Shown here in pieces: positions 1 through 9,000 of a stretch of 64,000 nt of DNA. Position 1 is the first letter of the stretch, and each line of letters opens with the position of its first letter. The DNA lies in the NCBI RefSeq assembly GCF_052425735.1, contig NC_135760.1, positions 12,524,001 through 12,588,000 on the forward strand. Reading direction: 5' to 3'. The notes under the pieces are model-generated. The model made no database searches, had not been told where the DNA came from, and saw only the letters and a list, made by a program, of their open reading frames with translations. Both the position numbers and the translations under genes were made by a program. This stretch comes from Oculina patagonica (taxonomy: Eukaryota).

Positions 1-3000
1 TGGATCCTGTAAATATTCTGAAAGACAGTATGAAAACAAATTTAAAAGTCTGATCAAAAATACACAGGATGAAAAGATTTCTTTGCATTTACCTGTCTAC
101 AGCAACTACGACACTCTGAGAACTCGTCTCACCAACTGTTTCTTGAATGTAAGCAATTTTCTTGGGATCTAAGAAAAAAATAAAATGGCATTAAGTAAAC
201 GTTACTCCTAGAAAAGACAGAAAAAGCGATCCTCCTTCTAAAAGACATTGTAAGCGTTGTTATACAAACTTGCACAACTTGGAAAAGTTTTGGTTGATTC
301 GTGACACTGAGTTTATAGTTCTGTTAGCCTTGGGTTGGGTGCATAGTTCTAAGTTACTAAGGAACTGGCTGCTCTCTGACTGGTAGAGCATTTTATGAGA
401 TTAAAATTGTGAAGGTTTTACTCACCATGAGAGGGTACAAGACCAGTGGTGCCCATAGACACTGGTGTAGAGATACCCTGTCCTACCCCTCCTGAGTGGC
501 CCATACTTTTAACTCCTGTTCCAATGAGCTGAGCGAGTTCCAGTTGAGATATGCACTTGAGTATCTGCAGAGAAATGCGACATGTCAAGATCAGTGATTC
601 ATCAAGCTAGAGACGACAAAACTTAAACGGTTTTTCATGGAAGCCACAGTTGGGTTGCACAATGCGGCCATACAATGACAGAATAATAATCAATCCAGAC
701 ACATTCACGTTAAAAATAATGAGTTTAAGCAAACCACAACGGCAACGGCTACGGGAACGTCGATAAACAAAAGATTTAAAGAGAAGTACAATGGATCTGC
801 ACGTGCGTTTCAAAGCTTTGTACATTTCTTGACTATCCACTTCGAAACAACAACGTGAAATGACCAAATTCTGCGTGGTCTGGAGAACGTGAACCACGAC
901 GGCAAATTGTTTTAAGTTTCTATTAAGAATTGAACGTTGCCTTAACATAGTCAGGCTGAGGACAGTTCTGACAGCGAAAGAAATACTAAACTGATGTTGT
1001 AAATGGCCCAACTCACCACGAGTCTCTCGTAGCTCAGTTGGTTTGAGCGCCCAACCGGTATCTGGGAGGCCATGGGTTCTATTCCCGTCGGGGACTCCGA
1101 ATTTTTCTTTGTCCCATGCTTGTGTCATGTAGAAAATCTCATCTTTATTATTTATTAGCGAGCTTAAAATTTACCATCTTTATTATTTACTACAAACTGA
1201 TGTTTTTGAAGAAAACAATCACCGAACGAGGACATACGATTAAAACGAACTGTTAAAGCCGAGGATCAGAGGGTGGAATGCCCCATTTGAGAATCGACTA
1301 ATACACAACAATTTATTGGCAATATTAGCCAAAGCTCCTAAATAAGCGTGAAATTAACTTTTTTATCGACGTTGTCTTCGGCGTCGCTGCAGTAGTTGCT
1401 CGAACACACTAATTACCTCATGCCACGCCCTTCCAAGGTAGTTACCATCCGTCTGTGCAACAGTTATTAGTGTTTTGATTGTGTCAATGTTCTTTGTCTT
1501 TATTTCATGTAATCCTGCTGTTGCTGTGAGCAGTGTGAATCGAGACAGTGCTTGGACAAAACTGTCACGTTCAAGCTGGAAAATGAGGGGAGGTAAAATA
1601 AACTATAAATATGAAACAAGAAGGCTATTAAACTTAACTTCAACCTAAGCAACTTGTTGGAAACCTGACGAAAATGCTGGGGTAACCTGCAATGAAATAG
1701 CATCTTGTCCACGGGAGTAGCAGTACTCCTTGTCGCTTAATGCTAAACAATTGGAATTACATGTATGTACATGTAGATACCGGCACTACCAATTTAGCTT
1801 GGCCACTATAAGACTATCATTTGAGAGAAAAACAACATGCCCCTAGCCCCAAAAACAATAGCAACTACTACACTAGAGGACCAGTAGAATTACAATTCCA
1901 AGCTTACAGGAGCTGGTACACTATTGTTATTCCCGCAGAAGGGATTCCAAAAAAAGACTACTGGTATTATTTCTGAAGCGTCTGCTGTTGATTGCATGCA
2001 TGTATCAATACCTGCATTCCAAAGATGCATCCAATTCTGATTGCACAGCGTATGCCGTCCAAACACAGTGAGGCTACCTGCTGGTCATCACAGTGCTGTA
2101 AGTTTACACTAAATGCTGCTAGAAATGGACTCCAGGTAACCTGCAAAGGAAATTATACCAAACATCTAATTATTTACATGTACCACTAAATTCCTCAAAC
2201 TAAAATACACAGGAATGTATTGAAATCGGTTTGGAGAATTTCTATTTTGAGTTTCAGACTTTGCACATACCTTAAACATGGGCCTGATGTGTTCCACATG
2301 AGTAGCAGACGTGAATGTTGTTTGAATCTGACTTACTCCTTCAATCAATGTCTTGGCTGTCTGGGCCATTTGTTCCATCTCTTGGTAGTACAAGAGTCTC
2401 CTTTGCTTTTCATTCTGGAGATCTAATCAAGAATGAATCAAAATGTTTGTTAGTATGCCATATCAATGCATGTACTTAGAGACAAACCATTTTCCAATAT
2501 ACCTGTTTTCAAATTTCTTTGGAGAACATTAATTTTATTTCTTGATGACATGGAACATATGCATTTCACATGCATTTTCAGTTTGCCCAAAAAACAAATC
2601 CCTTTTGGACATCACTTACATGTACAGATGTTGTGCTCTGTCTGTAGCAGTTTGTCTGGTGCAGTCTGTCTGGTGCAGTTCAGTAAATGGATCATTTTTG
2701 GACATTACTTACATGTATACGTACTTGTAGTGCTGTATCTATTAGCAGTAAATCTGTTTTGAGTGCAGTTCAGTAAATAAACCATGTTTAGACATTACTT
2801 ACAGATAGTGCTGTATCTGTTAGCAGTTTTGGGTGCATTTCTCATCTTAATTTCATTCTGCGATATCTCATCGTAAATGGACTCCAGATACTCTTGTGGC
2901 AAGTCTTTGCTGTCGTTGATTCCTTTGTTCATTGTGATATACTGTTCTTTCGTTATTTTCCTTTTTACCTGCAGAAATAAAAAGTCATTAGTATTGCTGT

Positions 3001-6000: not shown

Positions 6001-9000
6001 TATGAATGTACTATTATCTAGGTAGTGAGTAAATTAAGAATTTTTATGTATCGGTAAGTCATTGTATAAGTAGAAAAACAAACTTGCGTTATAATCTATC
6101 TGGCTAATCATGTAAAAACAATCTTTCCAGGATAGAAGCCCTTGTAAACTTGAACTTGTATTTTAATTTTCCTTATTCTTTATTTTTGGCTGTACCTAGC
6201 AACTCAATGTATTTAAGCTGTGTTTTGTAAATTTTAGTTGTGATTTGTTCATTAAATAATTTTGCAAACAAACAAAAAAGAAAAAAGAAACAATCAAGTG
6301 TTTGCAAAGAAGAGAAAAAAAATCAGACAGACCACTTGGACCAAGAAAAACAAATGAACTTACCTGAGGAGTTAGCTACATGTGAATGTGGATTTAGATA
6401 AAGTTCTCTGCTCCACTCCACCATACACTTCAATATAGATACCAAACACTCCAGACCTTTAAGACGTATACTCTTTTCTTGCACCTACAAACAAACAAAA
6501 ACAGCATAAGGAACTAATGAAACAAGTAAATTGTCTTTTATGTGTACCACATTTTTCAGGTAAAGTAAAGGAATTCTCCCACATACATAACACATATATT
6601 AGACCTGCCAACTCTCACGCATTATACGTTAGTCTCATGCCTGCAAATTCAAAACGTTGATCTCACCCGTACAAGCTAATTTCTCACGACTGACTGACAA
6701 ATCTTGATTTGTTACTCTTAAAATGTAAATTCAATTCAATTTGGGCAAAAAAAGTCCAAAAATGAGCATCGTTATTGGGGTTTGAGTGGACTTCACCCTG
6801 ACTTAACCCACATCGGCAATGTTAAAAAGTGCTCAGAAATCAGCACATCTTCGGGAATCTCCAGAAATAGTCGGAATATCTTTGGAAAGTTGGAGATGGT
6901 AATGTCACGCATTAATTTTGACTTGTGAAAAGTTGGCAGGTATAGTATATCATTTGGTTGACTGTAAGATGTATCAAATGCTATACCACTCTGCATTGGT
7001 GAATTAACAACAGTGTATTATCACACAATTGTAGTTCAATTTTGTATAATTTAAACTGTTTCATATTACAACTTACTGGAGTGGCAGATAGCACTATTGC
7101 TTGTCTTCCTTGAGCAATCTTGGCCAAGTCACTTGTTAGTCGTTCAAAGATGTTGGACAGTGAAAGATCACAGTCATAGTTGAGGTAAATATCAACAACA
7201 CACTGAGCATCTGAAAGACAGTTTGACGTTATCAGTTTTAATACAATACATTCCATATCAGTACATTCCATATCATCTGAAAGACAGTTTGACATTATCA
7301 GTTTTAATACAATACATTCCATATCAGTACATTCCATATCATCTGAAAGACAGTTTGACGTTATCAGTTTTAATACAATATATTCCACCAATAGCATGTC
7401 ATTATCAAAATATATTAATAATTATTATATAAATATACCTGAACATATTCTGGTCAGGGCCTGCATCACCATCCATTTGTGTTGAAATGAACTGGTTGAA
7501 GTCTCCAGGATGTTAAGAAAGATCTCTTTAAAAAACACCTACATGTATCACAAAGATATGCATAATATTACTTATAAAATTAAAAAAAAAAATGACTGAA
7601 TGACAGACAGACAGACTAGACATACAGAGTGACAGCCAGACATACAGAGTGACAGACAGACAGACAGACAGACTGACAGACCAGACTTACAGAGTGACAA
7701 ACAGACAAAGGAATTGATGTACAGAATGTTGATGGCTGTGACAGCTGGTGACAATGATGGACTCACAGACCATCTGTCTGACCCAATGACCAACCAACCG
7801 ACCAATGAATTGAAACATTAATAATGCCACATGTATATTTCCATTCCAGGATAAAATAAAATGCTACAGTAATGATGTAAAGGAAAAAGGAAAAATCTAA
7901 GAGAAGAAATAGACACAAAGATAGTCTAACCTCAATCTGCATCTTGAGATGAGTTTTGAATGACGACAGCAATGTAAGAAAGATAGCCAGTGACAGTTCA
8001 AATACAGCTGGGACAGACGAGACACCATTCTTTGACAAAGCTACACAAAGGTATTGTTTAATGGCTGTTACAAACATCTCATGTGAACAGAACACTGGTC
8101 CTGCATTCTGAAGACAAGATAGCATCAATTCCAGGGAAAGAATCTTTGATCTCAACTCATGGGACCTGCAACAAATCAAAAGGTTTTAGAATGTACATTA
8201 AGAAATAAAATTGACGTTAAGACCAAAAAAACTTTCTAATTGTCACTTACTTAGGATCTAAAGGTGCATCAGACAGGGGCTTCATTGAGAGTTTACACAG
8301 CGACCTGAACACTAGAAATGCATCTTTCTGAGTGATGTGAGAAAACTTGACAGCTCCTCCTCCTTGACTATTTAAAGAAGTTGATGATGCACTTCCTTCT
8401 GCTTCAGTTCCTGATTCACTGTGAGTGTCTCCTAGATCGTCTGACATATGTGAAGACGTTTCTGTTGGTGTTGAGGGTGGCTGGAGATCATACTGTGACA
8501 CTCCATTGACAATGGGTTTTTCTGGACTACTTTCATTAACTTCTCCATTTGATAGAACACTCTGATCTAATGTACATTTAACGAGAAAGAAAAACTTGTT
8601 AGCTACAGCACTAAATGTATTCGAAAATGGCATATTAAACTTCATGCTTTTTGTAATACATGTTTTTAGTTAAGGAACACAAGGCAAATATATTCAGAAT
8701 GTTTTGGTCACCATGGTCAGTATTCTTACTAACAACACTTTCAGTTACAGTTTAGTGATAACAGAACATTTTATATTGCCCTTTCTACAAAATGTATGAG
8801 ACTGTTTTAACAATACCTAAAGGATTGTCTGGATTTACTTCCTCAGACTTTACTGGTTCTTCAACCTAATAAACAAACAAATAAGTAAACAAATTAACAA
8901 AAAGGGACTTCAATATCTGTTTCTTCCACCTTATTTGTTCTTCCTGTCATGTACTATTTCAAATGCTTACAAGTATCATTTGATGTAAGTGGCAACCAAA

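Follow-up and report, generated by a model that had tools for sequence, protein, structure and literature searches.

In intron 7 of the human coagulation factor VII gene (F7), a 37-bp variable number of tandem repeats (VNTR) has its first element placed across the exon 7 boundary. Its pseudo-donors, although identical and able to function, stay silent, and splicing uses the donor that lies furthest upstream (Borensztajn et al. 2006, PMC1557585). A systematic screen of human segmental-duplication genes has recovered further internal tandem repeats at exon–intron boundaries (De Grassi and Ciccarelli 2009, PMC2812944). Here we describe arrays of this kind in a BIG1/BIG2-type ARFGEF gene of the coral Oculina patagonica, which lies in a stretch of 64,000 nucleotides (nt) analysed as a whole (contig NC_135760.1 of assembly GCF_052425735.1, positions 12,524,001 to 12,588,000; hereafter the window, in whose coordinates all positions are given unless stated otherwise).

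The coral arrays with units of 42, 32 and ~90 bp have the same anatomy as the F7 VNTR and, at the level of assembled contigs, the same outcome. As in F7, the pseudo-sites are identical or nearly identical to the authentic site. The coral gene differs in having four independent arrays, one of which multiplies an acceptor. Moreover, copy-number polymorphism and decoy competence, the latter demonstrated by mutagenesis, are established for F7, whereas the coral arrays are known from sequence and contigs. The human screen shows that long-unit boundary repeats are a recognised class found in numbers; however, the human repeats often change splicing, giving novel introns or alternative transcripts (PMC2812944), whereas the assembled coral transcripts show no such change and the coral introns are long-established, occurring at the same positions in other corals. 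Intron gain or sliding by tandem genomic duplication (PMC4974935, PMC2891723) likewise duplicates a splice signal and has the extra copy spliced out. There, a new intron arises from duplicated exon sequence, whereas the coral introns existed beforehand and were lengthened from about 96–345 to 228–681 nt. New here are the coral ARFGEF host, the occurrence of four independent arrays within a single gene, and an acceptor array whose last site, out of three equal ones, is the one joined in the assembled transcripts.

Arrays that copy splice sites into introns

The ARFGEF gene occupies positions 1–13746 of the window on the minus strand, where about 22 exons encode the N-terminal ~1062 codons. Three tandem arrays overlapping its exon–intron boundaries had been noticed in a first-pass annotation. 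Both repeat analysis and joints in RNA contigs confirmed them, with units of 42, 66 and ~90 bp placed at donors 4115 and 2802 and at acceptor 7211. In each, the terminal unit straddles the boundary and the splice signal is copied head-to-tail into the intron. The units are mutually unrelated (local alignment scores of 15 or less), in line with the earlier view that the arrays are independent and of different ages; their number in the gene is, however, four and not three.

The 42-bp array (3752–4128, minus strand) comprises 9.0 copies with 93% matches according to Tandem Repeats Finder (TRF) and has a 126-bp higher-order period. It was seeded at the 3' end of a Sec7-domain exon (4116–4286; RNA joints 3434/4116 and 4286/4595), and its first unit contains the last 12–13 nt of that exon together with donor 4115. 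In transcript orientation all units read AAACTAAC(C/T)CCA(C/T)^GTAAGGA (here and below ^ marks the boundary). The array thus contains nine intact donors, A(C/T)GTAAGGA, eight of which are intronic decoys, CA(C/T)^GTAAGG. Read-through to a decoy meets an immediate stop (ACG TAA). The host intron (3435–4115, delimited by RNA contigs) is 681 nt long, of which 364 nt are array; its ancestral length is ~345 nt.

The 66-bp array (7208–7387, minus strand; 2.7 copies, 97% matches in TRF) holds acceptor 7211 and was seeded at the 5' end of an exon from the HUS-box region (7077–7210; RNA joints 7210/7439 and 6482/7075, also supported by tblastn). All three copies end in ...AAACTGTCTTTCAG^ATG, with an identical 20-mer before AG^ATG, and every copy includes a branch-site-like CTGAT, the acceptor TTTCAG and the first three exon nucleotides (ATG). 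The three acceptors lie at 7343/7342, 7277/7276 and 7212/7211. The two upstream ones are open and in frame, so that their use would give 22 or 44 additional amino acids. According to RNA contigs, the host intron (7211–7438) is 228 nt long, 177 nt of it array.

The ~90-bp array (2580–2827, minus strand) is decayed. Self-comparison revealed three copies spaced by 93 and 90 bp, with 63–88% identity. This repeat is absent from the TRF output and is recovered by a uniform lag scan (31/36 matches at lag 90), which found no cluster in ten shuffles of the gene. The array holds donor 2802 and was seeded at the 3' end of another Sec7-domain exon (2803–2968; RNA joints 2422/2803 and 2965/3347, with tblastn support). 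Unit 1 consists of the last 25 exon nt, the donor GTAAGT and about 53 intron nt. All three units keep GTAAGT, and the exon tail ACTGCTAA.AGATACAGCAC is retained in the units; read-through to a decoy gives TGT AAG TAA. The host intron (2423–2802, from RNA contigs) measures 380 nt, of which about 223 nt are array.

The fourth junction array, again at a donor, lies outside the window at positions −6072 to −5711 (L019 3928–4289, L019 being the sequence that covers the rest of the gene). It has 11.4 copies of a 32-bp unit, the first of which takes in the final 12 nt of an exon 150 nt long (−5573 to −5722; both ends in phase 1). Support for this junction comes from a relative (L016), in which the orthologous exon is equally long and shares the donor CCACT^GT(A/G)AGTAC but is followed by no array. 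Most decoys of the 32-bp array read GTTAGT, a weakened donor.

The exon share of the unit is 12 nt in the 42-bp array, 3 nt in the 66-bp array, 25 nt in the ~90-bp array and 12 nt in the 32-bp array, and the breakpoints stand at no fixed distance from the splice site. Tandem exon duplication or mutually exclusive exons were ruled out, since the units include 3–25 exon nt and a single kind of splice site.

Splice sites used in RNA contigs

To see which of the multiplied sites are used, we relied on assembled contigs of two runs, X1 and X9 (guessed to be RNA; two studies under two organism labels), which provide exon coverage only. The contigs join 2422/2803, 2965/3347, 3434/4116, 4286/4595, 4851/5518, 5758/6364, 6482/7075 and 7210/7439, and the parts skipped end in CT..AC, that is, GT..AG on the minus strand. 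Introns 2423–2802, 3435–4115 and 7211–7438 are removed, and with them all three arrays in their entirety. It follows that, of the nine donors in the 42-bp array and the three in the ~90-bp array, the first is in each case the authentic one (4115 and 2802, respectively), whereas among the three acceptors it is the last (7211). No use of a decoy site was seen among the contig joints listed, ten others falling outside the list, and only the exon-proximal site is used at each of these three arrays; rare isoforms are missed by assembled contigs, so this check on splicing holds at contig level.

These observations bear on the idea that the arrays are kept by selection as regulators of splicing or expression. 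Decoy donors that bind U1 might strengthen exon definition or divert transcripts to nonsense-mediated decay, and the in-frame acceptor array might give rise to isoforms lengthened by 22 or 44 residues next to the HUS box. Intact splice signals favour such an account: all nine donors of the 42-bp array are preserved, the old ~90-bp array has kept GTAAGT in each of its units, and the 66-bp acceptor units are open and in frame. However, only canonical joints were found, and the RNA depth over the 66-bp array is fully accounted for by the flanking exon, which has 10 bases in the bin. Protein searches with array-spanning frames matched only the exon part in other sequences, or nothing, which is a weak negative for copy-number variants and for transcripts with the in-frame 22-aa insert. 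The weakening of most 32-bp-array decoys to GTTAGT fits drift or selection against decoys, and the arrays are absent in related genera (see below). As for the ~90-bp array, unit 3 ceases to be similar at the point expected for the end of an older, shorter unit; such a unit explains the three-unit alignment, and selection on these decoy donors was rejected. Overall, we give selection for a regulatory role, whether through donors or through the acceptor isoforms, only a slim chance. The earlier suggestion that the arrays tune splicing or seed new exons found no support in the exon-proximal junctions of the two runs.

Origin and age of the arrays

The three arrays of the window have no copies elsewhere in the coral's own 529-Mb genome: each matches its own locus only. 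They are therefore local duplications and not a dispersed element, and an origin from a dispersed repeat or a transposon-borne satellite was rejected.

Orthologous loci, collected via exon-level proteins, come from Tara Pacific metagenome scaffolds and show 82–92% exon identity. In all mapped relatives the introns occupy the same positions and the exons have the same ends as in the ARFGEF gene, for which reason intron gain by tandem duplication was rejected as well. The comparison of orthologous introns, one of the checks suggested by the first-pass annotation, bore out a derived state of the arrays: the junctions are single-copy in other coral genera (L009, L010, L011, L012, L013, L016 and L017). 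The intron that corresponds to the 66-bp array is 83–104 nt long and single-copy in four relative loci (L009–L012), and that of L009 aligns to one unit. The donor junctions of the 42-bp and ~90-bp arrays are single-copy in four other coral genera, where they read ...GAAACTAATCCCAT^GTAAGGAC... and ...ATAGATACAGCACAATAT^GTAAGTA..., respectively. Neither TRF nor the uniform lag scan found arrays at homologous junctions in the mapped gene part of L010, L011, L013, L016 and L017. Several repeats do occur in L011, in the 5' half of the gene. Two of them are close to known exons: one is a run of trinucleotides, the other a 106-bp repeat within an intron, whose start lies about 55 nt beyond a donor. 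The absence from orthologous introns of other coral genera shows that the arrays are independent, lineage-specific duplications, and they are recent and local.

Codon 4118–4120 adds to the history of the 42-bp array. The exon copy is TCC (Ser), also in the RNA contigs, whereas the eight decoy units and the coral relatives have CCC or CCA (Pro). Since both decoys and relatives keep Pro, the decoys were copied from the exon end before the change to Ser.

Could the arrays be assembly artefacts, or pieces of dispersed repeats or transposons that merely resemble exon ends? Short-read DNA contigs (X16/X19) are indeed interrupted within the 42-bp array, at 3781 and 4025, and stop at either edge of the 66-bp array, at 7212 and 7365, although such breaks are the usual effect of repeats in short-read graphs. 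The same contigs include the ~90-bp array in full, with 2 differences; of the 42-bp array they cover both ends, namely 2.5 units at the start and the final unit. In addition to being unique in the genome, the units run on exactly from the exon sequence and preserve its ancestral codon. An artefact of assembly was rejected on the strength of these independent contigs, and we regard this whole class of explanation as highly improbable.

Other tandem duplications and the role of chance

The first-pass annotation had also stated that all the long-unit repeats it could find in the region overlap splice junctions. This is true of the 42-, 66- and ~90-bp arrays, whereas two further repeats are purely intronic. 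One is a 21-bp array of five copies (7603–7707, TRF), situated inside intron 7539–7930 at 64 nt from the acceptor. The other is a borderline 20-bp repeat of 1.9 copies (6211–6248, TRF and lag scan), away from any junction. Two more duplications outside the window span no junction: a 44-bp intronic array of 3.8 copies, carrying AAGGTGAGT on the antisense strand, at −2458 to −2295 (L019 7542–7705), 80 nt from a donor, and a 145-bp duplication at −1965 to −1714 (L019 8035–8286), which ends 28 nt before an acceptor. Altogether, the whole gene has seven clear tandem duplications, four of which span a junction; the three that do not are distributed one in the window and two outside.

How often such spanning would arise by chance was estimated by a placement test, in which the arrays were collapsed and a segment of each unit length was placed randomly and kept if it fell within an intron or spanned one boundary. 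The chance of spanning is lowest for the 21-bp unit (0.085) and highest for the 145-bp unit (0.45). With the ancestral lengths of the introns taken as given (96, ~142, ~200 and 345 nt for the spanning arrays, 308–535 nt for the others), 2.7 of the seven are expected to span a junction and P(>=4) = 0.24. In the half of the gene outside the window one of three spans a junction, which fits chance (P 0.60).

An explanation that the four arrays invite is a mutational process specific to splice junctions, connected for example with co-transcriptional splicing or with the junction sequence, which would preferentially start tandem duplications and over-produce them in the coral genome. It was essentially this process that the first-pass annotation had proposed. 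It would account for four of the seven duplications spanning a junction against the 1.4–1.6 expected under uniform placement over the whole gene. The same array kind also occurs in another gene: at G000:C3:9041250–9041424, a 32-bp array of 5.7 copies starts in the tail of an ankyrin-repeat exon, its first unit containing the exon tail and donor AAACAACG^GTATGG (verified; exon with Pfam Ank match and array together at L020 4250–4576, G000:C3:9041250–9041576, minus strand). On the other side, the statistic is post hoc and many windows were scanned, while the values obtained with the introns hit and for the outer half of the gene are those of chance. The position of the breakpoints relative to the splice site is not constant, and the sites copied include donors as well as an acceptor. 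The RNA joints are canonical, and orthologues in four other coral genera have no arrays. Finally, where introns are short, chance alone would place roughly 10–15% of the long-unit arrays in genes across a junction, as estimated from the placement test; finding such arrays repeatedly is thus to be expected and is in itself no sign of enrichment. We therefore consider a junction-specific process improbable.

The most plausible origin of the arrays

We think it likely that the arrays are ordinary tandem duplications that happened to straddle the junctions of short introns, with the extra copies removed together with the intron. The coexistence with three non-spanning duplications in the same gene, the differing breakpoints and the unrelated units all speak for a chance origin. 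Such a null explanation, short introns combined with tolerance of duplications that leave one intact exon, had been stated alongside the more specific proposal and suffices for the facts. The arrays are best regarded as a known kind of harmless by-product and not as evidence for a new process.

Each array would have started as a local tandem duplication, by replication slippage or unequal exchange, of a 32–90-bp segment across a short-intron junction. If the spliceosome then stays with the exon-attached site, the 5'-most donor or the 3'-most acceptor, the extra copies would for that reason leave with the intron. The mRNA would be unchanged and the duplication nearly neutral, the decoys probably being silent and not used at a low level with their products lost to nonsense-mediated decay. 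Subsequently, the copies may have behaved as a minisatellite, expanding in blocks, as suggested by the higher-order period of the 42-bp array, and decaying by point mutation, as in the ~90-bp array and in the GTTAGT decoys outside the window.

Several observations fit a chance origin less well. Uniform placement over the whole gene gives P(>=4) of 0.02–0.04, a post hoc value for a single gene chosen from a very large scan. Tandem duplications are ~3.6 times as dense in the gene as in its flanks (8 in 22 kb versus about 6 in 62 kb), and exon sequence makes up a small part of the unit (0.05–0.38) in each of the five junction arrays that were verified. With regard to silent decoys, part of the 42-bp array is covered by an X1 contig of low depth (bin 3829–4009, depth 2.4 versus ~158 on exons), which could represent pre-mRNA or rare decoy use. 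Contigs are blind to rare isoforms, and donor-decoy transcripts, which would have a premature stop, may be hidden by nonsense-mediated decay.

The more general proposition, that splice junctions are preferred seeds of minisatellites in the coral genome, be it through mutational bias or through selection for decoy sites, appears unlikely to us. If it were true, rows of spare sites would occur regularly in the coral's genes, whose output they would reduce or diversify via unproductive or alternative splicing.

Host gene and surroundings

By its sequence, the host gene is of BIG1/BIG2 type, with a Sec7 domain, flanking DCB/HUS and HDS regions, and collinearity with known BIG proteins. A protein search with the 83-residue exon 7928–8176 returned 940 relatives of BIG1/2 type, including a 1773-aa protein (P0032) with 86% identity. 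Exons located by tblastn with this protein are collinear with it and cover residues 8–1756 over the whole gene, ~1062 N-terminal residues being in the window. Splice-site inference gave a consistent reading frame across the exons, which was combined with the RNA contig joints to define the gene. Exon 4116–4285 corresponds to a Sec7 segment (Pfam, 2.6e-21), and the orthologous loci have matches to the HUS, DCB, HDS and BIG2_C domains. The gene extends beyond the left end of the window by about 8.3 kb. The G+C content of the window is ~38%.

Apart from the arrays, the introns include three stretches (5277–5457, 5820–6000 and 3467–3647) with word depth in DNA runs of up to 16257, compared with ~150; these are probably dispersed repeats. 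A segment of about 250 nt with very high word depth (3087–3336) is missing from the X16/X19 DNA contigs, which join 3086 to 3337, and probably represents a high-copy repeat whose insertion into intron 2969–3349 is polymorphic. When the same contigs are compared with window positions 2200–3086 and 4025–5052, they differ by 0.2% in one stretch and by 6–7% (65 substitutions, 12 gaps) in the next, which suggests a mosaic of very divergent haplotypes. Both X16 and X19 contigs also show a go-back joint, 7593 to 7412 with TTTTA in between. It reflects either a 182-bp tandem duplication that would include exon 7439–7538 in other individuals or an artefact of the A-runs present there.

The remaining arrays of the window are located in the tail of a long interspersed nuclear element (LINE), upstream of a gene or far from exons, and are uninformative on junction spanning. 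A LINE-like reverse-transcriptase open reading frame (ORF) of 340 aa (window 33030–34256) ends in a tandem repeat (34012–34256). Within 35749–38052, a 31/43-bp array of about 650 bp lies immediately upstream of a minus-strand ORF of 459 aa that has no introns. Elsewhere in the genome, a 142-bp array of 6.5 copies with 96% matches was seen at L021 3188–4100 (G000:C3:9350188–9351100).

Implications for splice-site choice and annotation

The arrays amount to a natural test of splice-site choice in a cnidarian. In the assembled contigs, the splicing machinery, offered nine identical donors, takes the first; offered three identical acceptors, each with a branch-site-like sequence, it takes the last. 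Both choices indicate that it is the context on the exon side that decides. The arrays are also a warning for gene annotation, as they present many equally plausible false splice sites. Should junction arrays prove to be enriched genome-wide, this would have a bearing on intron growth, on the origin of new exons and on regulated unproductive splicing.

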